From the sequence record PV231353.1: a DNA stretch of 64,000 bases. One strand, written 5' to 3'. The notes under the pieces were generated by a model. The model did not search any database, was not told where the DNA came from, and saw only the letters and a program-made list of their open reading frames with translations. The translations under genes and the position numbers were made by a program. This document shows, piece by piece, positions 6,370 to 61,000 of the stretch. Position 1 is the stretch's first letter. Each line of letters begins with the position of its first letter.

Positions 6370-6845
6370 CCGAGGCCCGCATCTATAACGGCGCGGCCGG
6401 CGCCATCTTCATCCGCAATCCCAAGTACGGGGTGATCGAGACGGACTCGCTGGTGGTGATCGACCGCCCCGACGATCTCGAACATCACGGCCTGATCGGG
6501 CGGCTGCACATCCAGCCCGGCATGGACACGGTGATCGTCAAGGCCGGCGTCGTCCACGTCAACGTCTACCCCTGTCAGGTCCGGCCGCTGGCGCTGGGCG
6601 AGCGCATCGGCGATCCCGAGGCCAACGCCCACCTCCAGCAGATCGCCGAGATGGTCGGCGAGGGCGAGGACGTCGGCGCGGCCTGGGAGAGCGTCCAGGC
6701 GATCATCTTCGAGCGCGACAAGCTCCATACGGCGGCCGAGCGCGTGCGCGACTGCCTGCGGTCGGCGAACCTGACCGACTCGGTGCAGGACGTGCGCGGC
6801 GAGATCGAGACGGCGGCCAACTTCATCGCCGAGGCCCTGGCATGA
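6366..6845 (+). CDS. hypothetical protein
   Basis: ATGA coupling, GC3 bias. Confidence 0.75.
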   Translation: MTEARIYNGAAGAIFIRNPKYGVIETDSLVVIDRPDDLEHHGLIGRLHIQPGMDTVIVKAGVVHVNVYPCQVRPLALGERIGDPEANAHLQQIAEMVGEGEDVGAAWESVQAIIFERDKLHTAAERVRDCLRSANLTDSVQDVRGEIETAANFIAEALA

Positions 6846-7995: not shown

Positions 7996-8349
7996 GCGAG
8001 GGCGCCAAGCGCAAGCGGGCCGCCCGGCGCGCGCCGCAAAAGACGCTGATCGAAAAGCTCGACACGATCTCTCGACGAGAGCCTCGCCGGGATCGAGCAT
8101 CCCTCGCAGGTGGCGATCAATGTCTGCGTGCCCCGCGCGGACCTTCAGGAGGCCGTCAGGGGCCTGAAGCTGCGGGAGGTGTCCACCGGCCTGCCCGAGG
8201 ACTTCCTGGTCGCCTGGGACGATCTGCGGCGGGCGATCACCGCCGTCGAGACCGCCAGCCTCTACTCGATCGGCGAGGCCGTCCGCTGGCTGGAGGAAGA
8301 GCGCATGAAGTTCGACGCCAAGGTTCGCGACACGGCAAGGTACGCATGA
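7992..8349 (+). CDS. hypothetical protein (apparent frameshift near 8068)
   Basis: MSEGAKRK...KLDTI continues into LDESLAGIEHPSQVAINV in another frame. Confidence 0.6.
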
Positions 8350-8672
8350 CTCCCAAGACCTTCATCGACAAGCTGCGCGTCGGCGCCCAGAAGGCCTTGG
8401 CGCGCTCACGGGCCTGGACGCCCGAAGAGAACATCGTTCTCCAGACCCTGGTCTGGGCGCCAGCCAACATCCAGCAGCGCTCGGACCTCTATGTGGCGGG
8501 GGTGATGCGCGGCATGCTGGCCCTGATCTCGACGATGAGCGGCAAGGTCTCCGAGGAGATCAAGACGCTCCTGTGGATGGCCGGCGAGGCGACCGAGACC
8601 GAAGCGCCCGTGCCGGACGATCAGGTCCTGGCGGCCCTGGCGGCGCTCGACAGCCTGCACGCGAGGGGGTGA
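8346..8672 (+). CDS. hypothetical protein
   Basis: ATG 8346 coupled to upstream TGA. Confidence 0.7.
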   Translation: MTPKTFIDKLRVGAQKALARSRAWTPEENIVLQTLVWAPANIQQRSDLYVAGVMRGMLALISTMSGKVSEEIKTLLWMAGEATETEAPVPDDQVLAALAALDSLHARG

Positions 8673-17112: not shown

Positions 17113-18003
17113 ATGCCGCGCCTTTCCAACGATCGCCACGAGATGTACGCCCTGATGCGGGCCAAGGGCATGAAGCCGCAGGCCGCCGCCCAGGCCGCCG
17201 GCTTCGTGGCTGGCTCGTCGATCTACGCCGAACTGGAGAAGGACCCCGAGGTCCAGGCGCGCGCCCAGGAACTGCTCGACGAGAACAACCTCAAGCGCGA
17301 GCAGATGCGCACCGCCGCCACCGAGGCGGCCAAGGTCGTCGGTCAGGTCTCGGGCCTGTCCAAGGCCTGGGTGCTTCAGAAGCTGGCCGAGAACGCCCAG
17401 ATGGCGGCCCAGGACGGCGACTACAAGGAGAGCAACGCCGCCCTCAAGCTGATCGGCGACGAGTTCGGCATGTTCAGCGGCGCTTCCTCGGAAGGGACCG
17501 AGGGCCAGAACGGCGAGCGCGTCTACGATCTTGACGGGCTGAGCGCCCTCCTCGTCAAGGGGACCTCGGCGATCCCCGTGCCGCCGCCCAAGGTCGACCC
17601 GTCCGCCGCCTTCGACCTGATCGCCGGCAACGGGGCCGCCTCCCGCCGCGCCCGCGAGAGCCGGGCCTTCTCCGACGGCGAGGAAAGCGACGCGGTGTTC
17701 TCCGAGGACGCCGATGTCGACGCGGTCATGGACGGGGCCTGGAGCGGCCCCAGCCCCGACGACTACCTGGAGGCCGAAAATTCGCTCCAGGAGGCCCCTG
17801 AAGCCGCTGACCGACCCGAGCCCCCGGCCGACCCCGTTCCGGCCGCTGGCGACCCCGCGCAGGAGCCGGGAACCTGGGAGCAGATCGATCCCAAGACCTC
17901 CCCCGAAGCGATCATGGCGCGCATCCAGCCGCCGGCCAATCCCCGACTTCCAGCGATGACCGGCCCAAGCGCCGCTCCTCGCGCTGACCCTAGAACGCCG
18001 TGA
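17113..18003 (+). CDS. terS: terminase small subunit (probable); true stop may be 17987
   Basis: Directly upstream of TerL; N-terminal HE.YA..RAKG..PQAAA.AAGF TerS-like helix motif. Confidence 0.65.
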   Translation: MPRLSNDRHEMYALMRAKGMKPQAAAQAAGFVAGSSIYAELEKDPEVQARAQELLDENNLKREQMRTAATEAAKVVGQVSGLSKAWVLQKLAENAQMAAQDGDYKESNAALKLIGDEFGMFSGASSEGTEGQNGERVYDLDGLSALLVKGTSAIPVPPPKVDPSAAFDLIAGNGAASRRARESRAFSDGEESDAVFSEDADVDAVMDGAWSGPSPDDYLEAENSLQEAPEAADRPEPPADPVPAAGDPAQEPGTWEQIDPKTSPEAIMARIQPPANPRLPAMTGPSAAPRADPRTP

Positions 18004-20731
18004 GCTACTATCCGATCGAGGACCGCGCCAAGGCCCGGTCCGTCGTCAAGAACCTGCTGGACCTTCAGCGCGAGGCGGTCAAGGCCTCGCGCGGCGGCCT
18101 GATCCTGCCGCCCGACCAGAAGGCGATCATCACCCAGGTCACCGAGACCGAGGACCCGGCCCGCTGGGTCGACCTCCTGGGTCAGTTCGCCGATCGCGTC
18201 CAGACCGATCACCTCGCCCGGCTCAAGCCCCTGGCCAAGCACGACTTCAACGCCTTCTGCGAATACGTCAACCCCGAGGAGGCCCCGGCCTCCAAGTGGC
18301 ACGTCTACCTGACCTCGCTCCTCCAGGAGATCGAGAACAACCACGAGCTTGAGCGCTTCGTGCTCAACTGCCCGCCCGGTCACGCCAAGCCGCTCGACGT
18401 CGACACCGAGGTCCTGATGGCCGACGGGTCCTGGAAGCGCCTGGGCGACATCGAGGTCGGCGAATACGTGGTCGGCGAGAGCGGCGCGCGCTGCAAGGTC
18501 ACCGCCGTCCACGAGCAGGGCGAGCTTGCCACCCTGAAGATCACCACCGCCCACGGCCGCCAGATCATCGCCGCCCCCGATCACGCCTTCCGGGTCGGAA
18601 ACACCTGGAAGGAGGCGGGCAAGCTGCGGCCGGGCGATGCGCTGTCCGTGGTCGGCGCCGCCAACCTCAACTACGACGCCAGCGGCAAGACCATCGACCA
18701 CTTCGAGCTTGCCGCCTACCTCCAGGCCAAGGGCGGACGCTCCTACTTCCACCGCATCCACAAGAGCGGGCCGAAGACCTACCGCAACGTCTTCCTGTGG
18801 ACCTCCGACCACCGCGAGGCCAGCAAGATCAGCGCCTGCCTCAAGCGCCTGGGGATCGCCTTCAAGGGGCGCCTCGCCAAGCACGAGCAGGTCTGGAAGA
18901 TGCGGCTCGCCACCGAATGGGGCGACGCCCTGGCCGAGGAGTACGGCCTGGACGCGCGGATCGACGCGCGCCGGGTTCCGGCCTTTGTCACGAAAGGCGA
19001 CGAGGAGCAGATCGCCCGCTACCTGTCGACCTACACCTCTCTGGCCGGCGAGGCGCCCGACCGCTACACCATCCCGCGCATCATTCTCTACTTCAAGAAC
19101 CCGGCCTTCGCCCGCGACATCCAGCGCCTGTTCGCCGTGGTCGGCGTCAACGCCCGCATCGAGGGGCGCAAGACCGGCCGCACCCGGCTGATCCTGTCGG
19201 GGCCGGACCTGGAGGCCTACTTCGCCGCCGGCCTGACCTACACCGGCCCCAACGCCGACAAGCTCGACGACAAGCGCGCGGCCTTCCCGACCTCGCCCTC
19301 GCTCCTGGCCGACACCGTCACCTGGATCGAGCCGCACGGCGTGCGCCCCTGCCGCTGCCTGACCGTCGAGGACGAGCACACCTTCATCGCCGAAGGCGTG
19401 GTGGTCCACAACTCGACCTACGCCTCGCGCCTGTTCGTGGCGTGGCGCCTGGGGCGCGATCCGCGCCAGAAGATCATCGGCGGCGGCCACTCCCAGCGCT
19501 TCGTCGAGAACGAGTTCTCCGGCAAGATCTGCAACCTCGTGCGCACCCCGCAATATCGCGACGTCTTCCCCGACGTGGTCATCGACCACGCCACCTCGGC
19601 CAAGGACATGTGGGCGATCGCCGGGCACGGCGGGCAGTACGCCGCCAAGGGCGCCGGGCAGGCCATCCACGGTCTGCGCGCCCACTTCGTCTGCGTCGAC
19701 GACCCCTACCGGTCGATCGAAGTGGCCGAGTCCGCGATCGAGCGCGAGAAGATCAAGACGTGGTTCTTTGGTGACGTTGGCTCGCGTTTGTTGCCGCTCG
19801 CCAAAGTATTCCTCATCATGACGCGCTTCCACGAGGAAGATTTGACCGGGGAGATCATCAAACTCAACCAAGAAGTTCTCACCGGCGCCGACCGTTATCA
19901 CATCGTTGAAGCGCCCGCCCTGTGCTACGACCCCGAGAACGACGTCCTGGGCAGGGCTCTGGGCGAAGTTTTGTGGGACTACTATGACTTGCATTATTTC
20001 AAGCGCAAGCGGTCCGAGTGGAAGTACCAAAGATTTGCTTTGGTTTATCAACAACTTGCCGACGCGGCCTCGGACACCTCCATCGCGTCCAAGTTTCAGA
20101 CCTACGATCACCTCCCCCACCTGGAGCCGAAGGTGCTCAAGGCCCGGCTTGACGCGGGTCACGCCGACGAGCGCGGGCGGCCGATTCCGGACCGCAAGGA
20201 GCACTTCCGCCGGGTGGTGGTGAGCGTCGACTCGGCCAACAAGCCGGGGGCGCGGAACGACTACAGCGTGGCCCAGGTCTGGGGGAGACCCACGCTCGCA
20301 AGCACTACCTGATCTACCAGGAGCGCAAGAAGGTCGACATCACCGGCCTGACCGAGATGATCGAGCGGATCGCCAAGCGCTACGAGGTCGACGCCATCCT
20401 GGTCGAAGACAAGGGCAACGGCACCGCCTACATCCAGGCGCGGGGCCAGACCGACAGCCAGCGCCGGCTTGCCCCGGCCCCGATCGAGGCGATCCAGGTC
20501 CCGAGCACCTATTCCAAGGAGTTCCGCTTCAACGAGATCGTCCCGATGATCGAGGCCGGCGAGGTCTTCCTGCCGGGCAAGGCCCCGTGGCTCGACCTGC
20601 TGATCCGCGAAATCGGTCAGTTCCCCGAAGGCGCCCATGACGACCAAGTCGACGCCATGACGCAGTACCTCCGCTGGGCCAAGTCCAAGCGCACGCGGTT
20701 CGGCGCGCGCAAGGTCGGCTCGATGGGCTGA
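18000..20731 (+). CDS. terL: terminase large subunit with intein (apparent frameshift in G-run near 20285)
   Basis: Walker A PPGHAK|ST split by intein; IHGLRAHFVCVDDP Walker B; MTRFHEEDL; nuclease domain SVDSA...VEDKGNG...HDDQVDAMTQ. Confidence 0.95.
18390..19412 (+). mobile_element. 341-aa intein, class-3 type, with degenerate LAGLIDADG region
   Basis: PLDVDTEVLMADG...; block B DHAF; block F CRCLTV; ends VVVHN|S. Confidence 0.9.
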
Positions 20732-20802
20732 CGAGGCCCGTTAACCATGTTTGTTAACCTCCGCCGGGGCCTTAACCCTAACACGGCGAGGGTTAACAGG
20801 CC

Positions 20803-20959
20803 AGGGACCCTTCGAAATTAACCCTTCGGGGACCCTGGGAAATCGACAGACGGGGACCCTGGCCATTTTCCGGCTGGGGACCCTGCCAAATTCATCGCCG
20901 GGGACCCTCCGAAATTCATCTCTGGGGACCCTGGCGAATTCAGAGCCGGGGACCCTGGC
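20803..20959. repeat. 24-bp-period array of GGGGACCCT (7 copies)
   Basis: Cores at 20804, 20828, 20852, 20876, 20900, 20924, 20948. Confidence 0.9.
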
Positions 20960-20964
20960 GAATC

Positions 20965-21168
20965 ATGGAGCCGACGATGGCCGGATTTCTCAACCTGATC
21001 CCGAACCTCGCGCCGTTCGCGCTTTGGGGCGTCCTCCTCTGGATCGCCGCCGAGGTGGTCTGGAGCGTCTGCCTCTGGGTCTATGGCCTGCGGACCCTGT
21101 TCAAGCTGCACCGCGACGATCTGGCCGAGGCGATCAGCTTCGAGCGGGCGCTCAGCCCCTTCGACTAG
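20965..21168 (+). CDS. small membrane protein
   Basis: One long hydrophobic segment. Confidence 0.6.
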   Translation: MEPTMAGFLNLIPNLAPFALWGVLLWIAAEVVWSVCLWVYGLRTLFKLHRDDLAEAISFERALSPFD

Positions 21169-21718: not shown

Positions 21719-21754
21719 AACGCCCTCGTGTTCCTCTGAACGCGGGGGCGTTTT
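21719..21754 (+). terminator. intrinsic terminator
   Basis: AACGCCCTCGTGTTC-CTCT-GAACGCGGGGGCGTT then TT. Confidence 0.6.
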
Positions 21755-21862
21755 GACGTCGGCGCGTTTTCGACTTGACGCGCGAGCGTTTTGACGCGGG
21801 CGCATTTTTGATCTCGACGGGCGAGCGTTTTGACGTCCGCGCATTTTTCAACTTGACGTCGT
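21748..21862. repeat. three 38-39-bp tandem repeats rich in TTGACG
   Basis: GCGTTTTGACG units at 21748, 21786, 21825. Confidence 0.85.
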
Positions 21863-21881
21863 TTCATTTACCGGGAGCGCC

Positions 21882-22132
21882 TTAGGGTTAACGCCGGCCG
21901 CCGAGCCCTGGGGCGATTTACCACCGCCACGTTAACCTAACGCCTGTTAACCTATCGGTTGTTAAGGTTAACGCCCCGTTAGGGTTAACGCCCCTTAACC
22001 CTGCCCGCGTTAAGGTTAACACCCCGTTAAGGTTAACGCCGGGCGCGCCCAGGCCCTACCGGGCCATACCGGGTATGACCGGCCCTACCCGGCCCTACCG
22101 GTTAGGGTTAACGCCCCGTTAGGGTTAACGCC
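21882..22132. repeat. GTTAAC / CtrA-site cluster with 17-bp unit GTTA(A/G)GGTTAACGCCCC
   Basis: Nine GTTAAC; TTAA-N7-TTAA at 22016; TTAA-N7-TTAG at 21968 and 22108. Confidence 0.85.
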
Positions 22133-22137
22133 CGGCG

Positions 22138-22244
22138 AGCGCCCAGCCCCGCCGTAGCGCCCCTACGGTTCGAAGAGCCCAGCCCAGCCGGGTCCCGCCC
22201 GGCGACCCCTACACCCTAGAGGCTATTTCTTAACAAGAGGTAAA
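22138..22244 (-). ncRNA. candidate sRNA 1 from a leftward CtrA-type promoter
   Basis: Minus-strand TTTA-N7-TTAA-N11-TAGGGT; 54-nt core shared with 24102-24155. Confidence 0.45.
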
Positions 22245-22273
22245 CGCGAAAAAGATTCTGCGGCGGCGCGGCG

Positions 22274-22352
22274 TTTACTTTTTGTTAAGACTTTGCGCCC
22301 ATAGTCCCCCTTGTCCCCGCCGCATCCCGCGCCGGGCAAGGAGCTTCCCGCC
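22274..22352 (+). promoter_or_regulatory. CtrA-box early promoter and hairpin leader (first of 12 forward copies)
   Basis: TTTA-N7-TTAA-N11-CATAGT; other boxes at 22563, 23659, 24236, 24697, 25275, 25868, 27062, 28217, 30181, 30770, 31243. Confidence 0.8.
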
Positions 22353-22538
22353 ATGATCCCCGACTCGATCATGAACCCCCGCGACCATTTCCACCGTCTG
22401 CGCGAGGAAACCGCCCGCGCTCTGGTCGAGGCCTTCGCCGAAACCGACCCCGGCGAGGATTACCGCGCCGAAGAGAAGGCCGGCGCTTGGGTTGTCGCCT
22501 ATTACGACGCGGCGGGCGAATTCGTCGCCTATCTCTAA
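22353..22538 (+). CDS. early hypothetical protein
   Basis: AAGGAG SD behind CtrA promoter. Confidence 0.75.
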   Translation: MIPDSIMNPRDHFHRLREETARALVEAFAETDPGEDYRAEEKAGAWVVAYYDAAGEFVAYL

Positions 22539-22637
22539 CCGCCTTCGCCCCCTGGCGCCGCGTTAACGGTTTGTTAACATGTTGGCGCCAGGGTCGCCCT
22601 AGCCCGGCGCGTCGCCGCGCCTTCGGAGAAAAACGCC

Positions 22638-23441
22638 ATGCTCTACACCCCCGCCGCCCGCCGCCTTCGCGGCTATCGCGAAACCGCCGCGAAGAACGCC
22701 GAAATTCACGCCCGCCCGCACATGGCCGACAACGTCGCCGGCTACAACGAGTCGGTGTGGCCGACGACGGCGCTAGGCGTCGCCGCCAAGGCCGGCGCCT
22801 TCAAGCGCCCCGAAACCGCTGGCAACTGGTCGGAAGATCGCAAAGCCTATTACGCCCCCGCGTGGCCGGCCGGCTGGCGCGTGCTAGGCACGGCGCAAGA
22901 GGTTTGCCACAAGGAAGGATCGCGCCGGGTCGACCATTCCGGATGGTACACGACGCCCGACGACTACAGCGCCACGCTTTCGGGCTATGTGCTGCAAATC
23001 CCCGCCCGCGACGGCCGCCCGCAATACGTCGCCGGGACCGCCCATAGTGAATGGGACGGGGTGACCCTCTATCCCGCCGACCGCTACGACAACCCGCTTG
23101 ACGCGGCGAGCGCCGCCGACCGTCACGCCGAACGCGACGCCGAAGAGGAACGCGAATATCAAACCGCGTGGCAAGCGGGCGTGCGCTACGCCGAACTCGG
23201 AGCCGAAGCCAAGGAGGCCCGCAAGGAAGCGCTGGCGATCCTCGCCGAACGCCGCAAGGTCAAGGGGCTGGAAACCCCCGCCTTGTGCGGCGCGATCCGG
23301 GCGCAGGTCGAGGCCCTGCTAAGCCGGATCGAAGAGGCGCGCGCCTCGCGCGCCAAGCTCAAGGAAGGCGAGGACTCGCGCCTCATGTTCTACCCGTCCG
23401 CCGCCATGGTCGCGGCCTTCAATGACGGCGCGGCGTCGTGA
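22638..23441 (+). CDS. early hypothetical protein
   Basis: GWY...GYVLQIP...Y.AG...AAD..AE..AEEEREY. Confidence 0.8.
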   Translation: MLYTPAARRLRGYRETAAKNAEIHARPHMADNVAGYNESVWPTTALGVAAKAGAFKRPETAGNWSEDRKAYYAPAWPAGWRVLGTAQEVCHKEGSRRVDHSGWYTTPDDYSATLSGYVLQIPARDGRPQYVAGTAHSEWDGVTLYPADRYDNPLDAASAADRHAERDAEEEREYQTAWQAGVRYAELGAEAKEARKEALAILAERRKVKGLETPALCGAIRAQVEALLSRIEEARASRAKLKEGEDSRLMFYPSAAMVAAFNDGAAS

Positions 23442-23628
23442 AGGTCGCCCGCGATAGCTTCGCCGTGTTCTGGACCCTCCCGCAAGGCGGGGTCAATTTC
23501 ATGCAGACATGAAACGGGCGCTCTACCCGACCGCCCGCGACGCCGCCCGCGCCTTCCGCGCCATGTTCCCCCGTGACCGGGTCAAGAGCGTCCGCGACGC
23601 GTCCGGGCGGTTTCTCGCCTTCCGCTAG
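23438..23628 (+). CDS. small early protein (apparent frameshift near 23500)
   Basis: VKVARDSFAVFW...NF joins (H)ADMKRALYPTAR...FR*. Confidence 0.5.
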
Positions 23629-23737
23629 GCCAGAGCGCCCCGGACCTTTTCCGGGGCGTTTACTCTTTGTTAAGACTTTGAGCCCATAGTCCCCTTGTCG
23701 CCGGGCAATCCCGCCCGGCGCTTTGTAGGATCGCCCC

Positions 23738-24031
23738 ATGTCGCACGTCTACGACATAGAATATACCGACACTTTCGCGGGGGAGGCTAATTATTCATGG
23801 ATTCGCCGCGCGGCCGTGACCATGCCGGAATTGACCCATTATGGGTACGATGGCGGGTCTAACTACGCCAAGGCTAACCGCGTATTTAACCGCGAACTCA
23901 TGAGGCGCGCCAAGGCCGCCATGGGCTTGACGGGGGTGCGCGGCGTCTCCGCCGCGCATGGCGACAATCTCGAATTTCGCCCGCACCGGTCCGCGACAAT
24001 CCTTTTTGTGACCTACCGCGACGCGGACTAG
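23738..24031 (+). CDS. early conserved phage protein
   Basis: YTDTFAGEANYSWIRR...EFRP. Confidence 0.8.
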   Translation: MSHVYDIEYTDTFAGEANYSWIRRAAVTMPELTHYGYDGGSNYAKANRVFNRELMRRAKAAMGLTGVRGVSAAHGDNLEFRPHRSATILFVTYRDAD

Positions 24032-24101
24032 GCCAGAGCCCGGCGCCGTCCCTTGGCGCCGGGCGTCACGCTTGCCGGACGCGTTAACCATGTTTTTGAA
24101 A

Positions 24102-24206
24102 AGCGCCCAGCCCCGCCGTAGCGCCCCTACGGTTCGAAGAGCCCGGCCCAGCCGGCTCCGCCGGCTACGGGATCAATCTAGCGCCAAAGTCTTAACAAGA
24201 GGTAAA
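24102..24206 (-). ncRNA. candidate sRNA 2 from a leftward CtrA-type promoter
   Basis: Minus-strand TTTA-N7-TTAA-N11-TAGATT; shared 54-nt core. Confidence 0.45.
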
Positions 24207-24315
24207 CGCCAGCGCCCGGCGATATCTTTTTCACGTTTACGTTTTGTTAAGACTTTGGCGGATAGTGTTCCCTTGCCGCCGGGCAATCCCGCCCCGCCGC
24301 TTGGAGCTTGCCGAC

Positions 24316-24699
24316 ATGGGGAAAACCCTGTTCCGCGAAATGGCCAAGGTCGCCGCCCCGGTGATCACCGCCTATCATGCCGACCTAGAAATTCATGACC
24401 GCAAGGTCATTGAAGGCCTGAAGGCCGGTGACGTCATCCTTTGGGCGCCCGACAAGGCCGGGACGACTCTTATCGTCCTGGCCCGCCAAGGCCGCCCCAA
24501 TCACCGCGCCGCCGAACACTTCGAGGCCGCCCAATGTCGCCAGCCCCCGGCGTGGTATCTGGCCAGCGTGTCGCACAATGGCGAGGCCGGGCAATGGCAA
24601 TTTGGCCCCGCCCCGGACGCCCCCGCCATCGTCGCCCGCTGGGCGGAGCAAGCCGCCCGCGATACCGCCCCGGACCCGGTGCGCGAGCTTCACCTGTAA
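24316..24699 (+). CDS. early hypothetical protein
   Basis: GGAG SD behind CtrA promoter. Confidence 0.75.
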   Translation: MGKTLFREMAKVAAPVITAYHADLEIHDRKVIEGLKAGDVILWAPDKAGTTLIVLARQGRPNHRAAEHFEAAQCRQPPAWYLASVSHNGEAGQWQFGPAPDAPAIVARWAEQAARDTAPDPVRELHL

Positions 24700-24759
24700 A
24701 CCTTTTGTTAAGGCCTCGCCGCTACGGTGGCGAGGTCAAACAACCAAGGAGCGCCGACC

Positions 24760-24957
24760 ATGGCCCCGCGAGGCGATACAGGCGAAGCCATGACCAAGGT
24801 CATAAGCCTAGACCTAGACAAGGCCACGGCCGAAGCCGTGAGCGAAGCGCTCGCCCATGTCTGGCGTGAAATATACGATCGCGAGCGCCGGGGCCAGGGC
24901 GGCAAGCTTCGCGCCGTGCTGGACAAGCTCAACACCGTTACCGACGCCCGCCGCTAA
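24760..24957 (+). CDS. early hypothetical protein
   Basis: AAGGAG SD. Confidence 0.65.
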   Translation: MAPRGDTGEAMTKVISLDLDKATAEAVSEALAHVWREIYDRERRGQGGKLRAVLDKLNTVTDARR

Positions 24958-24970
24958 AGGAGTCCAAGCC

Positions 24971-25243
24971 ATGCGCTACAACGTCAACGGGACCGGTTTT
25001 AAGGGCGGCTCCGCCCCGGCCGTCCCCGCCCAAGGCCTGACCGGTCACGCCGACGCCGCCGGCCTTTGGGTTCCCTCGCGCGAGCATATCGCCGCCATGC
25101 TCCCGCAACGCTGGCGCCACGCCTTCGCCCGCGCTTCGTTTTGGTATGACGCCCGCGACAACAAAAAGCCGTGCCGCGCCGACCTCTACGACTCGCGCGG
25201 CCGGTACCTGACTCAGGTCTGGGCGCATCCGGTTTTCAGCTAG
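24971..25243 (+). CDS. early hypothetical protein
   Basis: AAGGAG SD; FWYD...PCRADLY. Confidence 0.75.
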   Translation: MRYNVNGTGFKGGSAPAVPAQGLTGHADAAGLWVPSREHIAAMLPQRWRHAFARASFWYDARDNKKPCRADLYDSRGRYLTQVWAHPVFS

Positions 25244-25355
25244 GCCAGGACGCCCCGGAAAATCTTCCGGGGCGTTTACCTTTTGTTAACCTCTGGCCTC
25301 TAGGGTGACTTTCGCCGCCGGGCAATCCCGCCCGCCGCTTCGGAGTTTCGGCCCC

Positions 25356-25871
25356 ATGCCGCAATTCGTTCTTGATACCTCCGGCCAAGTCGCCCCGCCC
25401 GCTTCGGCCAAGCTTTGGCCGCATCCGCTGCGCTGGAATCAACTGAGCCCCTTCGCCCAAGGCTATATCGAGGCCCTGTTTTTCACTGAAAGCGCGCCGG
25501 GCGTGACCTCGCGCCAGTTCATGACCAAGGCCTATCAAAAGCGCCTCGAAAGCGGCGAGGCGGACGGCGCCTTGCCGGGCGACGTCGGCTTTTCCGACCT
25601 CGCGCCCGACACTCTCAACGCGATCTTGAACGATTGCGGGCGCTTCCAACGCGACAACGCCGACGCCCTGGCCAAGGCCTATGACCACGGGGGCGACTCG
25701 GGCGACTACGACGAGGCCGCCGCCGGCCGGGATTATTGGTACACCCGCAACGGCCATGGCGTCGGGTTTTGGGATCGCGGACTCGGCGAGATTGGCGAGG
25801 CCCTGGCCAGCGCCGCCCGCTACAGCGAACGTTACGCGACGTTTTACAACGGTAAAGTTCACCTCGATTAA
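25356..25871 (+). CDS. early conserved phage protein
   Basis: GYIEALFFT...DC..F...AGRDYWYTRNGHGVGFWDR. Confidence 0.8.
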   Translation: MPQFVLDTSGQVAPPASAKLWPHPLRWNQLSPFAQGYIEALFFTESAPGVTSRQFMTKAYQKRLESGEADGALPGDVGFSDLAPDTLNAILNDCGRFQRDNADALAKAYDHGGDSGDYDEAAAGRDYWYTRNGHGVGFWDRGLGEIGEALASAARYSERYATFYNGKVHLD

Positions 25872-25954
25872 GCTTTTGTTAAGACTTGTCCTCTAGGTTT
25901 GACTTCGCCGCCGGGCAATCCCGCCCGGCGGTCCTCTTCTCAGGATCGCCCCTT

Positions 25955-27006
25955 ATGACCTCTCATTCCATGGTTGCGCACCGTTGGGCGCAGGACGACG
26001 AGAACGGCCGCACCGCGCGCGGCTTCAACATGTATTTCGAGCGCTACGGGCGCGGCGCCGACCGCGTCAACGTGATTTTTCCTACGGGACTCACTTCCCG
26101 GCCGCCGCCTTCGTGACCGACGCGCACGGCCGCCGCGTGGTTCTCTACACGACGCACCGCCGGAGCATTTCGACCGCGAAACACCTTTCCCACATCCGCC
26201 ACGCGATTCCGTCGGGCGTGCCGGTGTTTTCCGTGCCGAACGTGTCGCGGATGCACAAGCCGGGCGGCGCGGGCGACTTCCACGGGGACAACCTGCGCGC
26301 CTATATCGAGAGCGCCGCCGGCCTCGCCGAAAAGGCCAAGCGCGCCCGCGTCAACGGCCCTTGGCTGCTTAGCCAAGCCCGCGACCAACTCGCCGAAGCC
26401 GCCCGTTACGCCGACGCCTTCAAGGTCAAGGGCTTCAAGGTTCCGGCCTTGGAAGACGTCGCCGGCCAATGGGCGAAGATGACGGCCGCCAAGGCGCGGG
26501 CCGAAGCCAAGGCCCGCAAGGAAGCCGAAAAGGCCGCCCGCGAACGCCGCGAAGCCGAACGGATCGCCGACGCCGAAGCCTTCGCCGCATGGATGCGCGG
26601 CGAGCGCCAGAGCGCCCCGTTTAGCTACCGGGTGCGCGATGACGGGACCGTCTATCTTCGCCGTTTCCGGGGCGTGGTCCGCGACCTGCGCAGCCAAGCG
26701 CGCGACGGCTCGCGCGTCGATGAGCTGCAAACCTCGCAAGGCGCGGCCGTGCCGTGGGAACACGCGGTCAAGGCCTTCCGGTTCATTAAGCTTTGCCGCG
26801 AACGCGGCGAGAGCTTCCACCGCAACGGCCGGGTGATCCGCGTTGGTCACTTCCAAGTTGACGCGATCGGCGCCAACGGGGACATGACGGCCGGGTGCCA
26901 CCGGTTCGCGTGGGATGAAATTGAACGCCTCGCCAGGGCCGAAGGGGTTTTCGACCTCCCCGCCGACGCCGGCGCCGTCGAAACCCGGCAAGCCGAACCG
27001 GCCTAA
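25955..27006 (+). CDS. early hypothetical protein (apparent frameshift in T-run near 26078)
   Basis: MTSHSMVAH.WA...IF joins SYGTHF...; C-terminal TSQGA.VP...GHFQVD.I..NGD..AGCH. Confidence 0.75.
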
Positions 27007-27141
27007 GCCCGCCCGACCCTCCAGCGCCCCGGCTCCCCGCCGGGGCGCTTTCGTGTACGCGGTAACCTTTTGTTAACTTCTGGCCTCTAGGGTGACTTTC
27101 GCCGCCGGGCAATCCCGCCCGCCGGCCAAGGATCGCAGACC

Positions 27142-27440
27142 ATGAATCTTTTCGTTGTCGCCATTGACCCCGCCCTCATCCCTTCGGCCGCCGGCTTCGT
27201 GGTCGCCTCCCCTACGGGTGCGGCAAGTGGCGCGCGTGCGTCGGGAGCGAGGCGGACATGATCGCGCTTCGCGACAAGATGCGCCGCGCGCACCCGGCCC
27301 CGGAAGGCTACAGCGTCCAGCCCCTGGCGTCGTTCCTGGCCTATCTCGAAACGGTCGGGGATAGCCCCTATGACCAGTTTCGCGCCCGCGACGCCGCCGC
27401 CCGCATCCTTGACACCCTGACAACGCACCTCGCCGCCTAG
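27142..27440 (+). CDS. early hypothetical protein (apparent frameshift in C-run near 27210)
   Basis: AAGGA SD; MNLFVVAID... joins YGCGKW...MIALRD. Confidence 0.6.
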
Positions 27441-27494
27441 TCCCGCCGCCCCCGGCCGCGCGCCGGGGCGCTTTCCTCGAAAGGATCGCCGACC

Positions 27495-27797
27495 ATGACA
27501 ACCCGTCTTATCGCCGTGCGCGGCCCGACCGCCGCCGAACTCGCCGACCCGTCCAGCCGCGCGGGCGGCGCCGAAGTCGTTTTCGAGCGCCGCGACCGCG
27601 AAGGCCACACGCGCCTTGTGTTCGCCGCGACCTGCTACGGGTCATATCAGCAATGGGGCGAAACCCGCGACGTGCTCGCCGACAACGTCGAGGCGGTCAC
27701 GCTCTGGGCCGAAGGCATGGCGGCCGTTGCCGCCCTCATCGACGAGAGCGACGACGACGAGGGCGACGACGCCCCGGCCGACGACGGGGAGGCGTGA
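27495..27797 (+). CDS. early hypothetical protein, acidic tail
   Basis: AAGGA SD. Confidence 0.75.
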   Translation: MTTRLIAVRGPTAAELADPSSRAGGAEVVFERRDREGHTRLVFAATCYGSYQQWGETRDVLADNVEAVTLWAEGMAAVAALIDESDDDEGDDAPADDGEA

Positions 27798-27800
27798 GCC

Positions 27801-28220
27801 ATGCGCACAACCAAGGCTCAACGCTTCGCCGCCATCGCCTTTGACGCCCTGGCCAAGGCCCTAAGCGAGCCGCGCCAAGCCGTCGCCCGCATGACCAAAT
27901 GGGAGGGGGCGGGCCATAGCTTCGCCAACCTGCAACGCGATTATGAGCGGTACGGCCCCGGCGCCCGCTCATGGTTTGGCCGGGCTGAAATGCGCTTCTT
28001 TGGGACGCGCCTTGAGGCCGCGCCGCTGGACTTCCCGGCGCTGGGCTGCACCCTGTTTCTGACCTCCGAAACCCCGCCCGGCGCCGGCCGGGTCTGGACC
28101 CTTCGCGCCTATGTCTGGGCTTCGGCCGATATCACTACGCTAACCCATGGCGACGAAACCGACGCGGCGACCGCGCAAGCGGCCTTTGACCTCTTATGGC
28201 GGGTCCTTTCCGGGCGGTAA
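27801..28220 (+). CDS. early hypothetical protein
   Basis: WF...EMRFFG.RL. Confidence 0.75.
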   Translation: MRTTKAQRFAAIAFDALAKALSEPRQAVARMTKWEGAGHSFANLQRDYERYGPGARSWFGRAEMRFFGTRLEAAPLDFPALGCTLFLTSETPPGAGRVWTLRAYVWASADITTLTHGDETDAATAQAAFDLLWRVLSGR

Positions 28221-28296
28221 CCTTTTGTTAACTTCTGCCCGCTAGGGTCTTCTTGCGGCCGGGCAATCCCGCCCGGCCGCCCAAGGATTGGATCGC

Positions 28297-28569
28297 ATGA
28301 CCCGCGCTCAAGCCCTCGCCCAAATGAACGCCCTTCCCGGTATCATCGCCTCCTTTGAGCGCGAGACGGGCGAATATCGCGTGACCCTGCGCTTTGGCCC
28401 GCTCCCCATGGGGCGCGGCGCCCAAGAGTGGATGCGCGCGCGCCGCGAAGCCGTCGCCAGCTACAGCGACGACAAGGCCGACGCCCTGGCCACCGCCCGC
28501 GACATGTCCGCCCGTTGGGAGGCGATGAGCGCCGAACAACGCGCCCGCCTCTATCACAACCCCGCCTAA
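28297..28569 (+). CDS. early hypothetical protein
   Basis: Behind CtrA promoter 28217. Confidence 0.75.
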   Translation: MTRAQALAQMNALPGIIASFERETGEYRVTLRFGPLPMGRGAQEWMRARREAVASYSDDKADALATARDMSARWEAMSAEQRARLYHNPA

Positions 28570-28636
28570 AGCCCCGCGCGCCGCCCTGGCCTTCGCCGGG
28601 GCGGCTCCCTTAAACCCCTCGCAAGGATCGCACCCC

Positions 28637-28930
28637 ATGACCGCCAAGTCCGCCCGCAAGCCCCTGACCAAGGAACAAAAGACCCGCCGCCGCGAAACCC
28701 GCCGCGCCGCCCGCCTCAACTGGTCGGATGAGCGCCGCGCCCGCGAATTCGAGCGTCAAGCCCGCTTCTTCCTGATGATCGCCACCCGCGCCCAAGGCGC
28801 CGGCCAAGGCCAGGAAGCCGCCCGCCTCGCCACGGTCGCACAACGCAAGGTGACCAACTGGCGCATGGCGCAGGCCTGCGCCCGGATTAACGCCCTGGCC
28901 GCGCATCCGTTCGCGGCCGTGGTCGCCTAA
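28637..28930 (+). CDS. basic early hypothetical protein
   Basis: AAGGA SD, Arg-rich. Confidence 0.7.
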   Translation: MTAKSARKPLTKEQKTRRRETRRAARLNWSDERRAREFERQARFFLMIATRAQGAGQGQEAARLATVAQRKVTNWRMAQACARINALAAHPFAAVVA

Positions 28931-28943
28931 GGAGGCCCCGCCC

Positions 28944-29126
28944 ATGACGCACCCTCACGCCCTGGCGCTGATCGCCCTCGCTGAAAAGGTGTTGCCGCTT
29001 ACCCGGCTGCACCCGCTCGACCAACGCGCCGCCGCCGTCGATCTAATCGGCGACCTCTACCGCCTCGCCGACGATATCGACGCGGCCCCGCAAGCCCCCG
29101 CCCTGGCGCAACCGAAGGCCGCCTAA
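28944..29126 (+). CDS. early hypothetical protein
   Basis: AAGGAGG SD. Confidence 0.7.
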   Translation: MTHPHALALIALAEKVLPLTRLHPLDQRAAAVDLIGDLYRLADDIDAAPQAPALAQPKAA

Positions 29127-29127
29127 C

Positions 29128-29433
29128 GTGACCGCCCTCCAACGCGCCGGTTTCGCTGCGCACCGTCGCGGCGTCAAATGGTGGAACAACCCGCATCGGG
29201 CCGGTTCCCCCGCCGCCTATCAATGGGACCAAGGCCACACCCTCGCCCGCCGCGACGCCGAACAAGCCGCGCTCGACGCCTTGGAGGCCGCCGACTTGGC
29301 CCCCGAACCGGGCGAGGTGATCACCGAAGCCTTGCGCCCCTATCTGGGCGCCGCCCTGGCCGAAAACCACGCCGACGACGTGCTAGACGCCCTCACGCGC
29401 GCCGGCTTCCAAATCACCCGCAAGGAGGCCTAA
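29128..29433 (+). CDS. early hypothetical protein
   Basis: GTG directly after upstream stop. Confidence 0.65.
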   Translation: MTALQRAGFAAHRRGVKWWNNPHRAGSPAAYQWDQGHTLARRDAEQAALDALEAADLAPEPGEVITEALRPYLGAALAENHADDVLDALTRAGFQITRKEA

Positions 29434-29438
29434 AGCCC

Positions 29439-29999
29439 ATGACCGACTCCGCCAAGATCACCGGCGCGCTCGCGCTACTCGCCGTCGCGGCCGATAATCT
29501 CCGCCAAGGCCCGGCCATGTCCAAAGCCGCCGACAACGTCACCAACGTCTGTAACTACGCCCTGACGCGCGCCGTCATGCTCAAAGCCGCCGACCAAATC
29601 GGCGAGGCGCTGGGCGCCCTGCAAACGGGCGGCTATGTGATCGCCCGCCGTCGCGATGTCTTCACCGATGAGGGCGAGAAGCTGGGCGACCTGTTGGCGG
29701 CGCTTTATGACGCCGTCCCGAACTACGCCGTAAGATCGCAGCGGCTCGCCGACGCCCTGGCCCCGGCGCGAGATTACGTCTATCAGCCCCGGTTCCGGGT
29801 CAAGCTGGACGCCGCGCCCGGCGCGCTCTTGACCGACTGCGACACGGGCGCAACGGTCTATTTCCAGCCGGGCGACGACGCCGACGCCTTCCGGGCCGAA
29901 TTCGCCCCGTGGGTTCACGCCGCCAACGTGACGGCCGAAGGCGCGGCCCTGGCCTCGATGATGAACCCGACCGCCGAAGAGTATTTCAGCCCCGCCTAA
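29439..29999 (+). CDS. early hypothetical protein
   Basis: AAGGAGG SD. Confidence 0.75.
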   Translation: MTDSAKITGALALLAVAADNLRQGPAMSKAADNVTNVCNYALTRAVMLKAADQIGEALGALQTGGYVIARRRDVFTDEGEKLGDLLAALYDAVPNYAVRSQRLADALAPARDYVYQPRFRVKLDAAPGALLTDCDTGATVYFQPGDDADAFRAEFAPWVHAANVTAEGAALASMMNPTAEEYFSPA

Positions 30000-30109
30000 G
30001 TCATCATTCCTACCGTCTATGACTTGTCACCGGCCGAAGTCTTACCCGGTGACAGTCTGGGCAAGTAAAGCTCACTCTGGATTTTATGACTTAGCGCAAA
30101 GGATTGAAT

Positions 30110-30184
30110 TTGCTCGAAAAATTCCTAGAAGCTCACAAAGTCGTTTTCTGGCTGCTCTTGCTGGCCTGTTTGTGGCGCTTTTAA
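30110..30184 (+). CDS. 24-aa hydrophobic peptide (not in ORF track)
   Basis: AAGGA SD, TTG start; MLEKFLEAHKVVFWLLLLACLWRF. Confidence 0.45.
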   Translation: MLEKFLEAHKVVFWLLLLACLWRF

Positions 30185-30265
30185 CGGTTTGTTAACCCCT
30201 GGCCCTCTAGGGTCGAATTCCCGGCGCGGCAATCCCGCCGCCCGGCCTTCCTTCGGAGCTTCCTA

Positions 30266-30712
30266 ATGTTCGCTTCCGTGACCCTTCCCGCCCATGACGC
30301 CCAAGGCCTGAGCCTCGAAACCGTCCACATGGTTTTCGCCCGTGAACTGGCGCAACACTTCGAGCACGTAATTTCCGCCCCCGTGATCGAAAGCTGGACC
30401 GACGAGGAAACCGGCGCCGTGCAAGAGCAAGCCGCCGTTTGCTTCACCGTTTCGGCGACCCCGGCCGCGTGGGAAGCCAAGGGCGGCCGGCTCGCGCGCC
30501 GGCTGGAAAACCTCGCCGCGCGCTATGCCGCCGACTGCGACGCCCCGGCCCTGACTGTCACCCATTGCGACGGGCAAACGGTCTATGTCGGCGCTCTGGA
30601 AGCCCTGGCGCGCCCCGCCCCGGTGCAAGGCCCGACCCGCGCGGCGGACCCGGCTTTCCTCCCCCGCCAGCGTGAAGACAAGGCCGCCCGCTTCGATCGC
30701 CTGACCGCCTAG
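30266..30712 (+). CDS. early hypothetical protein
   Basis: Behind CtrA promoter 30181. Confidence 0.75.
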   Translation: MFASVTLPAHDAQGLSLETVHMVFARELAQHFEHVISAPVIESWTDEETGAVQEQAAVCFTVSATPAAWEAKGGRLARRLENLAARYAADCDAPALTVTHCDGQTVYVGALEALARPAPVQGPTRAADPAFLPRQREDKAARFDRLTA

Positions 30713-30730
30713 CCCCTGGCCTCCCCTAGC

Positions 30731-30759
30731 GCACCGCCCCTAGAAAGGCGGTGCGCTTT
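30731..30759 (+). terminator. intrinsic terminator
   Basis: GCACCGCC-loop-GGCGGTGC then GCTTTT. Confidence 0.65.
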
Positions 30760-30853
30760 TCTGTGTCTGTTTACTTGTTGTTAAGGAATAGCCTGCTAGT
30801 GTCTCCTTGTCGGCGGACGCATCCCGCGCCCGCCCCTTTCTGGATCGCTTCCC

Positions 30854-31246
30854 ATGGCTCGCCCCTCTGACCTGCTCAACGTCAACGCCGCCCGCGTCCT
30901 GGCTTGCCTTGAGCCTATCGCCGCCGCCGCTAAGACGGCCCCGGCCGCCGACCGCGCCGCCCTTTCCTACCTGCTCGACGCTGGCGAGTATGTCGCCGCG
31001 TGGCGCCGCAACCTCACGGAAACCGACCGCCGCAAGGCCTATGGCGCGGCCTGCGCCGCCGAAGCCCTGGCGCTCGCCAACGCCTATCAGCCCGCCACCC
31101 TGCAAGGCGGCGCCGTCCGCCGCGCTCTGGGCGCCTATGCCGCCGCCCTTAAGGTCCTGCTAGACGGGGAGCCGGTTAAGGCGGTCCGCGCCGCCGAAGG
31201 CGCGGCGCTTTCGGTCCGCGCTCGCTACGCCAACACCCGCCTTTAA
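30854..31246 (+). CDS. early hypothetical protein
   Basis: Behind CtrA promoter 30770. Confidence 0.75.
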   Translation: MARPSDLLNVNAARVLACLEPIAAAAKTAPAADRAALSYLLDAGEYVAAWRRNLTETDRRKAYGAACAAEALALANAYQPATLQGGAVRRALGAYAAALKVLLDGEPVKAVRAAEGAALSVRARYANTRL

Positions 31247-58077: not shown

Positions 58078-61000
58078 TTGGTCGATATCGTCGCCGGCAC
58101 GCCTGTGTCCGTCTCCTATTCGGGGGCGTCGACGACCTATGTCGCGGCGGAAACGGGCCAGATGACCGTCCACCTGTGGGGCGGCGCGGGCGCGGGCGGC
58201 TACTATTCCAACGGCGCGGGCGCCGCCAACAAGTACGGCGGCGCGGGCGGCTACGCCACGCTCTCCTTCCTGGTCAAGCAAGGCGATGTCCTGACGATCG
58301 AGGTCGGCCAGGGCGGGCAGGTCGCCACGGGCTCGGGCACCACGGCGACGGCGGGCGGCGCGGGCGGCTGGCCCGATGGTGGCTATGGCGGCAAGTCGAC
58401 CAACGCCTATATCGGCTTTGGCGGCGGCGGCGGCTCGACCCGCCTCTACCGCAACGGCGAACTGATCGGAGTCGCGGGCGGCGGCGGCGGCGCGACCGGT
58501 CTCTATAACGGCGGCAATGGCGGCGGTGTTGCCGGCTTGGCCTCGGCCGACGCCAACTCCGGCGCGGGCGGCACCCAGAGCGCGGGGGGCACGGCGGGTA
58601 CGGGCACCCTGGCGATCCAGACCGGCCTTGGGTTCCAAGGCGGTCGCGGCGGCACGACCGCCTCGACCGCCCATGCCTATGCTGGCGGCGGCGGCGGCGG
58701 CGGCCTTTACGGCGGGGCCTCCAACGGCGGCGGCTCGCTGGGCGGCGGCTCGGGCGGCGGCGGCTCGGGCTACATCAACCAGAACCTCCTCTACACCGGA
58801 CGCCTCCAGGCGGCGCGGGCTGATACGAACGGCGTGCCGTTCGATGTCGCCGGCATCCGTCCTGCCGGGGTCGCCGAGGGCGGCACGGGACCGACGGTCG
58901 CGAGCACCGGCTGGGGCTCGATCACGCCGGGCGGTGACGGTTTCGCCTATCTGTCCCTGACCTCCGTGGCTTCGGCGACGGCCTTCCCGACCTCGGGCAC
59001 GACCACGCTCGCCTATAGCGGCGCGCGGCAGGTCTACACCGTCACCCAGCTTTCCACGGTCGACATCGAGATGTGGGGCGCGGGTGGTGGCGGCGGCTTC
59101 TACACCACCGGCGGCGCTTCGCCGCGCTACGGCGGCGCGGGCGGCTATACCAAGTTCACCAAGGTCTTGTTCCCCGGTGATCTCGTCGAGATCGAGGTGG
59201 GTCAGGGCGGGCAGGCCCCGGACGGGGTTGGCGGCAATATCGGCGGCGCGGGCGGCTGGCCCAATGGCGGGGACGCGGGACGTCCGTCCGCTAACGTCAA
59301 TGCCTATATGGGCGGCGGCGGCGGCTCGACCAACATCTACGTCAACGGGCGGCTGCTGGGCGTGGCCTCGGGCGGCGGCGGCGGGACCGGCTTCCTGAAC
59401 GGCGGCAACGGCGGTGGCAAGTGGGGCCTCGCCGACGCCAATGGCGCGTCCGGCACGGCCGCCACCTGGGCGCGGGACAACAGCACCAGCACGGGTCTGG
59501 CGCGTGGCTTCCTGCTGCGCGGCGGCCACGGCTCGCCGAACGAAACCCGTGACATCGCCCACGCCAATGCGGGCGCGGGCGGCGGCGGCGGTTACTGGGG
59601 CGGCGGCGGCGCGCGGGGCAGTGTCGGCGGCGGCGGCGGCGGCTGCGGCTACATCAACGGCGACCTGACCTGGAATCGCGATTATCAGTGGGGCACCCAA
59701 GGCACCGGCCAGCCTTACACCGGCGGCGCCTATGCGTCTGGCGTGGGCGTGGGGGGCACGTGCGGCACCAGCGCCGGCACCACGACCAATGGCGGCGACG
59801 GCCAGATCGTCTTCACCGTCACGGCCGCCAGCACCACGACCCTGCCGTCCGACAAGAACGCCCTTACCTATAGTGGCGTGGTCCAGCACTATGTCGTCCC
59901 GGCCGCTGGCGTCATCGATCTGAAGATGTGGGGCTCGGGCGGCGGCTCGGCGGTGCGTTCCACTGGCACGCCAGCGCGGGGCGGCGGTGGCGGCTGCACG
60001 CAGGTCCCCTTCATCCCGATCAAGCCGGGCGATATCGTCACGTTCGCCGTGGGGCAAGGCGGCCGAGGCGCGGTCGACGCCAACTCCATCTCGCCCGGCG
60101 GCTGGCCCAACGGGGGCTATTCGGGTCCGTCGGCCTCGGCCGGCGGCGGCGGCGCCAGCCTGTGCTACCTCAATGGCGAACTGGTCGCGGTCGCCGGCTC
60201 GGGCGCGGGCGCGGGCATCTCCAACGGCGGGTTCGCCGGCGGCGCGGCCTCGTGCGATCCCGGCTACGCCAACTTCACCTCCCACGGGGGCACCCAGACC
60301 ACGGCGGGCTGGTGCCCCACGCGCGTCCTCGAAGGCACCACCTACGGCACCTACATGCTGGGCGGCGATGGCCAGATCGACGGCGTCGCTCCCGACAACG
60401 TCAACGTCAATACCGGCGGCGGCGGCGGCGGCGGCTACTATGGCGGCGGCGGCAACGCCACCAACTCCAGCCGCTATTGGGGCGGCGGTGGCGGCTCGGG
60501 CTACATCAACCCGAAGTTCGCCGGCGCCATCACCGGCTCGACCAGCGTCAACGCCGCCAACAACACCGATCCCGACTATGTCGCGGGCGTCGGCGTCGCG
60601 GGCGTCGGCTCGACGACCTATAACAACCCCGTCACCAATGGCGGCGATGGCCGGATCGTCTTCACCTATGATATCCCGCCCAATCTGGTCGAAAGCCTGA
60701 CCACGGCGGTGCCGGTCGACGGTACGGTCAAGACCTATATCGTTGGCGCCGACGGCGATCTTGTCCTCGATCTGTGGGGCGGCGGCGGCGGCGCCGCCAC
60801 CATGTTGGCCGGCGGTGGCAGCGAACGTGGTGGTGGCGGCGGCTATGTCGGCGGTACCTACCCGGTCACCGCCGGGCAGGTCATCCGGTTCTATAATGGT
60901 CGCGGCGGCGGCGGTGGGGTCTATACCAGCGGCACGGCCACGACCCTGGTCGGGACGGGTGGTCCTGGCGGCTGGCCCGACGGTGGTCCTGGCGGTTATT

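Follow-up and report, generated by a model that had tools for sequence, protein, structure and literature searches.

The window analysed here is a stretch of 64,000 nucleotides (nt) from the sequence record PV231353.1, and its segment 21600-24800 matches Caulobacter phage RBC57 (PV231353.1), a phiCbK-like phage, at 100% identity. Two loci in this segment each carry a copy of a leftward-pointing unit that has a CtrA-type promoter and no gene. Parts of the same segment are 93–97% identical to the phages Ccr2, Karma, Magneto and phiCbK, where the counterpart occupies 1.6–4.7 kb of the annotated left terminal repeat. Coordinate 1 of phiCbK maps near window position 19977, within the large terminase open reading frame (ORF), consistent with Gill et al. 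(PMC3556154). Because of this mapping to the phiCbK-group records, both leftward units are placed in the direct terminal repeat, which contains small early genes of unknown function. The terminal repeat of phiCbK is densely filled with CtrA-binding sites (Mascolo et al. 2022, PMC9437464). When the RBC57 repeat is compared with those of the phages CcrColossus and CcrPW (Colossus and PW below), the unit and a neighbouring gene, called gene X here, are among the few parts that can still be aligned as DNA.

Each unit consists of a CtrA box in the -35 region, a GC-rich stem-loop at the predicted 5' end, a G-rich core of 48 nt and, 10–30 nt beyond the core, a half-site of the TTAACC type. The parts of the two copies are as follows.

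22230..22244, minus strand: copy 1, CtrA-like box (TTTA-N7-TTAA) from the motif scan, the box type of 12 forward early promoters
22213..22218, minus strand: copy 1, -10-like hexamer TAGGGT, 11 nt past the box
22187..22203, minus strand: copy 1, predicted 5' GC stem-loop of 6 base pairs (bp) with loop CGGGA, from folding and a covariance model
22138..22186, minus strand: copy 1, G-rich core, conserved across the family
24192..24206, minus strand: copy 2, CtrA-like box from the motif scan
24175..24180, minus strand: copy 2, -10-like hexamer TAGATT from the motif scan
24150..24166, minus strand: copy 2, predicted 5' GC stem-loop of 7 bp with loop GGA, from folding and a covariance model
24102..24149, minus strand: copy 2, G-rich core, 44 of 49 columns invariant in five phages
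24067..24101, no strand assigned: copy 2, A/T tract and TTAACCATG (a CtrA half-site type) just past the core, 29 of 35 columns invariant

The initial annotation, made from the letters alone, described two minus-strand promoters with the geometry of the forward early promoters, each back-to-back with one of these (at 22274 and 24236). A motif search for a CtrA-like box, followed after 11 nt by a hexamer of the form TAG..T, agrees with this in both position and sequence. It gives four matches in the window against none expected by chance, two on the minus strand (22213-22244 and 24175-24206) and two at forward promoters. Boxes with at most one mismatch to TTAA-N7-TTAA occur 17 times in the 64 kb, all within 21968-31243: 12 belong to forward promoters, three to a site array and two, with one mismatch each, to the leftward promoters, both of which carry the core. 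The 11 nt between box and hexamer in the leftward sites is also the spacing of the gp005-type promoter at 22563 and of 11 other forward promoters, and the gp005 promoter, of the same spacing class, is CtrA-dependent (PMC9437464). Aligned on their boxes, leftward and forward sites share one geometry, including a GC hairpin about 8–12 nt past the hexamer; the forward promoters are then followed by a Shine-Dalgarno (SD) sequence and a start codon, while the two leftward ones have neither. In each back-to-back pair, 44 bp separate one box start from the other (22230/22274 and 24192/24236), and the copy 2 pair forms an inverted repeat. The spacers between paired promoters (22245-22273 and 24207-24235) contain a conserved AAAAAGATTCT in most copies, including those of relatives and in either orientation. 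This motif includes a GANTC site for CcrM methylation; RBC57 copy 2 and Ccr2 have GATATC in its place.

Beyond their promoters the two loci share a block (22138-22191 and 24102-24155) that is identical at 53 of 54 positions, as had been claimed, and includes an exact 42-mer that found no chance match in shuffled sequences. Over the whole unit the two copies are 84% identical, versus 98% in the core. The core contains 23 G and 14 C. Its transcribed sense strand has five runs of at least three G within 49 nt, a density in the top 0.23% of windows. A G-quadruplex was considered and rejected, since runs 4 and 5 are not conserved, being missing from the fourth copies of PW and Colossus (PW_4 and Col_4; copies are numbered in this way within each phage).

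The unit was compared by BLAST with 50,697 phage records and further copies were then collected by local searches. Full-length units occur in eight records that represent six phages (RBC57, Ccr2, BL57, BL64, CcrColossus and CcrPW). There are 13 such units: two in RBC57, one each in Ccr2, BL57 and BL64, and four each in Colossus and PW. All 13 have the order promoter, hairpin, core, including Col_3 and PW_3, which are inverted in the genome, so that the rule tracks the promoter and not the surrounding genes. Three contexts can be distinguished. In type A (RBC57_1, BL57, Col_1, PW_1 and a further copy in phage Bajun), the unit points into an array of CtrA-like sites. In type B (RBC57_2, Ccr2, BL64, Col_2 and PW_2, with PW_4 and Col_4 as variants), it converges with a gene of 97 amino acids (aa), beyond an A/T tract with TTAACCATG and a GC hairpin. 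In type C, it has the forward orientation and lies between a terminator and the next promoter, flanked by a partial direct repeat. In a tree of the units RBC57_1 falls among copies of types A and C, and RBC57_2 among the type B copies of other phages. The two copies in the window are thus old paralogs, each clustering with orthologues elsewhere, which agrees with the earlier view of the loci as paralogous. A scan of IMG/VR with the core pattern matched CcrPW and Colossus only, an exact-pattern scan of 185,579 genomes gave chance matches at the seed only, none of them in Caulobacter, and JGI metagenomes likewise yielded chance matches only.

The site taken by copy 1 in RBC57 and BL57 is occupied by a tandem repeat in phiCbK and Ccr2. 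The phiCbK repeat (2180-2290) comprises about four GC-rich units of 22 nt (GGCGGAGGCCAGGGACCGCCCC type), and Ccr2 has fewer (about 2180-2230).

The core is the most strongly constrained part of its surroundings. In the orthologous cassette of five phages, 90% of columns are invariant in the core, 83% in the A/T tract with TTAACCATG and 72% in gene X, against 18–22% in the 5' untranslated region (UTR) and the spacers. Among all 13 units there is little or no change in the box, the TTGTTAAG part, the hexamer and, most of all, the core; the promoter spacer and the letters of the hairpin vary. A neutral recent duplication absent from relatives, which the initial annotation had named as the finding that would count against it, is contradicted by the existence of orthologues and by a core better conserved than the neighbouring gene.

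Both predicted transcripts open with a GC stem-loop, as annotated. A covariance model across relatives, suggested at the same time, was built with both this hairpin and a second one inside the block (CCGUAG-GGGCG-CUACGG) and used to realign 14 copies. The 5' hairpin is kept, with 100% of cells paired, compensatory changes in two of five pairs, stems of 5–7 bp in five spellings and paired 1-nt indels in its two arms; as read from the fold, Col_4 has a G-U pair that only the promoter strand can accommodate. The block hairpin is present in both window copies, but it is not kept in relatives: 87% of cells are paired, there are no compensatory changes, and ten broken cells affect PW_1, PW_3, Col_1, Col_3, Col_4, BL57 and Bajun.

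Coding potential is lacking. The initial annotation saw no ORF with an SD sequence, and the sole long minus-strand ORF (98 aa, from an ATG at 24091 inside TTAACCATG, antisense to gene X) indeed has none. Its counterparts range from 19 to 99 aa in four orthologues and stay open to the end of the stretch read in Col_4, and since length varies in this way the ORF is not conserved and was rejected as a gene. Comparison of orthologues revealed no start codon that opens a conserved frame in the units, and the 1-nt indels that match between the two hairpin arms likewise speak against a reading frame through the unit. In RBC57, neither copy is followed by codable sequence. ARAGORN found no tRNA in the window, and a TTCGAA in the core, considered as a T-loop remnant, was discarded, there being no T-arm pairing and no tRNA match in BLAST. 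Rfam at a permissive threshold returned chance-level matches only, the best being a palindrome artefact of the back-to-back promoters; the earlier failure to recognise a described RNA family is thus upheld.

The surroundings of the two units contain these further features.

22274..22305, plus strand: forward early promoter paired with copy 1, predicted to drive the 61-aa gene at 22353
24236..24267, plus strand: forward early promoter paired with copy 2, predicted to drive the 127-aa gene at 24316
21880..22135, no strand assigned: array, faced by copy 1, in which full and half CtrA-like sites recur with a period of 17 nt
23738..24031, plus strand: gene X (phrog_22729), encoding a 97-aa protein with no assigned function and converging with copy 2
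24038..24064, no strand assigned: GC hairpin separating gene X from copy 2; as the alignment is read, BL64 has a single G-U pair compatible with the plus strand
23699-23722, 24277-24295, 25315-25335, 25909-25930, 27100-27120 and 28257-28280: forward 5' UTR hairpins in the window

A type B unit follows gene X in all five Caulobacter phages that have this gene, and gene X is also widespread in other phage groups that lack the unit. It has no Pfam match, and its translation, as read, has no hydrophobic stretch; Pfam and PHROGs gave no function for the genes adjoining the units. The array faced by copy 1 is built of GTTAGGGTTAACGCCCC units, which form full sites of the type TTAA-N7-TTAG, and includes a short palindrome of CATACCGGGTATG type near 22060-22075. 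Its layout beside the type A copies is common to RBC57, BL57, Colossus, PW and Bajun. Judged by its sequence, the array may serve to titrate CtrA, or it may mark an origin or control region. Further left (21740-21860) are five spaced, iteron-like repeats containing TTGACG (GCGTTTTGACG and TTTTTCAACTTGACG forms), the sole A/T-containing stretch nearby; the TTGACG presumably resembles the Caulobacter -35 consensus. Most forward early mRNAs start with one and the same hairpin (GCCGGGC AATCCC GCCCGGC), itself a conserved 5' UTR element. Loop-loop pairing between the copy 1 5' hairpin and these hairpins (12–13 nt at 23709, 25919 and 28267) was not adopted, because it is mostly trivial, resulting from shared palindromic GC stems, and because the loop letters vary within one phage.

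Taken on its sequence features, the conserved leftward unit is a real, hitherto undescribed non-coding element. Being promoter-linked, locked in orientation, non-coding, highly constrained and provided with a 5' hairpin, it is most simply read as an untranslated RNA, and an RNA made from the CtrA-type promoter is the most likely product. Somewhat tentatively, we propose that both loci are early transcription units, self-contained and gene-less, from a family found in phiCbK-like phages, and that the working part of each is its core. As at the rightward early promoters, host RNA polymerase and phosphorylated CtrA would start transcription, here near 22205 and 24168 of the minus strand, and the 5' stem-loop would shield the end of the RNA. 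The invariant and largely unstructured core, and not the CCGUAG hairpin, would be the active part, either pairing with another RNA or binding a protein. Copy 2 would form one cassette with the convergent gene X, its RNA heading toward, and possibly overlapping, the 3' end of the gene X mRNA; the transcript of copy 1 would run into the CtrA-box array. The earlier statement that the leftward RNAs are made at the moment of entry is something that can only be inferred.

Several results weigh against an RNA function. RNAalifold reported no covarying pair, and the core is without covariation; whole-transcript fold energies are unremarkable on either strand (z about -1.5). A minus-strand scan found no intrinsic (Rho-independent) terminator for the units, and a T-run after the core is seen in types B and C only, being absent from type A, PW_4 and Col_4. 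A Rho site, as a C-rich stretch on the plus strand, was also tried and rejected, since it fails for the inverted type C copies. No complementary target of at least 10 nt to the core was found within the 64-kb window. The BLAST search detected no unit in phiCbK, Karma, Magneto and others, many of them close relatives, and the unit is therefore dispensable for this type of phage. Published phiCbK RNA-seq accordingly concerns a phage without the unit, and its gene-level supplement had no match for the gene names tried. In the Brevundimonas phage Bajun the copy is partial and degenerate, with the core kept and the promoter decayed. The core, moreover, always lies between CtrA sites, an arrangement that a DNA-level element would fit as well.

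Such an element is the main rival to the RNA reading. The core would bind a host or phage protein alongside the flanking CtrA and serve as an insulator or architectural part where convergent and divergent early units meet, or as part of an origin-like region, the leftward promoter being secondary; we consider this possible but on the whole unlikely. It would explain why the core is kept as primary sequence without structure, preceded by its own box and followed by either a TTAACC motif or the next box, why type A copies in the five phages named above adjoin both an array and iterons, and why in Bajun the promoter could decay while the core was retained. The fixed order of promoter and core in both orientations and the retained 5' hairpin point instead to a transcribed unit, and the core, as the alignment is read, shows neither the dyad symmetry nor the direct repeats that are usual where a protein binds. 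Origins that depend on transcription are known from T4, from ColE1 and from the Caulobacter origin Cori with its strong promoter, and a promoter-proximal, G-rich RNA might likewise make a stable R-loop that aids the start of phage replication. The five G-runs of the core, and the Cori-like layout of copy 1 beside the CtrA-box array and A/T-containing iterons, would suit such a role. It is nevertheless very improbable, given that the last two G-runs are lost in two of the copies, that phiCbK, Karma and Magneto replicate without any unit, and that the type B and C copies have no iterons nearby.

Two other readings share with the R-loop a lower likelihood than the RNA or DNA-level element. In one, the core is a cis-acting leader that modifies polymerase, in the manner of lambda nutL/nutR or of rrn leaders, and lets untranslated or antisense transcripts escape termination by means of a boxA-like stretch. 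The near-identical twin leaders directly downstream of early promoters recall such systems, as does the invariant GGGCUCUUCGAAC of the core, which probably resembles the boxA core GCUCUU; and a type C unit lies upstream of a second promoter and gene, so that the core can be a 5' leader. With a would-be boxB hairpin that is not conserved and no codable DNA downstream of either RBC57 copy, this role seems highly doubtful. In the other reading, the unit is a functionless relic of the shuffling of promoter cassettes, and the core is hitch-hiking DNA kept alike by recency or gene conversion. A mosaic of presence and absence among close relatives, the tandem repeat in place of copy 1 in phiCbK and Ccr2, the movement of copy 2 and gene X as a cassette and the partial direct repeat flanking type C are all what shuffling would leave behind. 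The conservation figures contradict it, to judge from the alignments: the core is far better conserved than gene X and the spacers of the same cassette, in the comparison of the old paralogs it also exceeds the remainder of the unit, and it survives in a Brevundimonas phage. We therefore hold a relic to be very unlikely.

The promoter class itself is already known. In phiCbK the gp005 and gp018 promoters are bound by CtrA, and their expression is lost in a ctrA temperature-sensitive strain (PMC9437464). The RBC57 pair resembles these promoters in its TTAA-N7-TTAA box over the -35 region, its hexamer spacing, its 5' GC hairpin and its genomic region. The described promoters face right and drive ORFs, whereas the pair reported here faces left, has no ORF and carries a conserved core of 48 nt. 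It is these leftward gene-less units that are new; they are not mentioned in the literature searched, including PMC9437464.

Among host elements the nearest parallel is CcnA, a non-coding RNA driven by CtrA, with CtrA boxes on both sides, which lies inside the Caulobacter origin (PMC8959179). Copy 1 has a CcnA-like layout, but the active loop of CcnA is CCCC, in contrast to the G-rich phage core, and the 5' 24 nt of CcnA, taken from published primers, show no sequence similarity to the unit. One may go further and see in the units a viral version of Cori and CcnA: non-coding RNAs tied into the cell-cycle circuit of the host and switched on by CtrA. Their G-rich loops and core (GGGA, GGGG) would act on C-rich partners, for instance by occupying the CCCC loop of CcnA, mimicking the GGGG of the ctrA and gcrA leaders and biasing the levels of CtrA and GcrA during infection, and copy 1 with its array would be a Cori-like control region. 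On present sequence comparisons we think this improbable.

Other phage systems offer partial parallels. The PeSL cassettes of T4-type phages, as Arbiol and colleagues are said to have described in 2010, are repeats of an early promoter and a stem-loop that flank shuffled early ORFs. They are similar in being repeated modules in a hypervariable early region of mosaic gene content; the RBC57-type units differ by adding an invariant core, by having no ORF and by being mostly inverted relative to the genes. Lambdoid phages have paired leader elements (nutL/nutR, and putL/putR in HK022), again two near-identical non-coding elements just downstream of early promoters. In RBC57, however, the boxB-like hairpin is not conserved and both copies face one way into gene-less DNA, and we know of no N-like partner for the phage units. 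In type I toxin-antitoxin systems, cis-antisense antitoxin RNAs overlap at the 3' end, which resembles copy 2 in its convergence with gene X and its constant association with that gene in Caulobacter phages. Gene X, at 97 aa and without a hydrophobic stretch, differs from such toxins, and the type A and C copies have no such partner. Compared with trans-acting small RNAs of the Hfq type, the units have their own predicted promoter and no ORF, but no terminator with a U tail.

Besides its copy of the unit, Bajun carries three other gene-less promoter units, at 6640-6700 (minus strand), 8245-8300 (plus strand) and 8340-8403 (minus strand) of its stretch. Each has a conserved leader, a hairpin whose loop is UUAGGGAGGGAUC, and one palindrome is the point on which two of the three converge. 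This leader family, a G-rich hairpin, is analogous to the RBC57-type leader but different from it. The Bajun units face palindromes built from GTTAACCATGTTTG, the motif also found beside copy 2, so that the placing of gene-less promoter units beside this motif may be general in the subfamily. The sequence GTTAACCATGTTT(T)G recurs after the terminase gene (20739-20757), beside copy 2 (24083-24097) and in the long perfect palindromes of Bajun (6540-6640 and 8300-8345). We take TTAACCAT to be a CtrA half-site or SciP-type motif.

The phiCbK-like phages are classic tools of research on the Caulobacter cell cycle, and their early promoters are known to use CtrA. With the unit, this group would have its first described non-coding element, and it is a small, easily deleted candidate for phage influence on the cell-cycle circuit or for a part in the organisation of the early region. 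Natural variants with zero, one, two and four copies ease comparison. Its value is limited by the small size of the family (six or seven phages), by the lack of the unit in the model phage phiCbK and by the fact that no function can yet be assigned.

Other observations concern the remainder of the window. The large terminase frame (18000-20731) is interrupted and reads as two ORFs (18000-20312 and 20357-20731). Relative to Ccr2 and phiCbK, whose terminase frame is intact, a G-run at about 20300-20305 lacks one base, and the split probably reflects an error in sequencing this homopolymer. About 70 nt beyond the end of this frame, and about 0.85 kb into the terminal repeat, lie some seven tandem units of 24 nt (GGGGACCCTGG ... 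AAAT; 20803-20970), which are kept in Colossus and PW and may be related to packaging. Far to the right, at 58100-63900, long families of glycine-rich repeats (GGCGGCGGC-rich) extend across several large ORFs, which presumably encode tail-fibre-like proteins.

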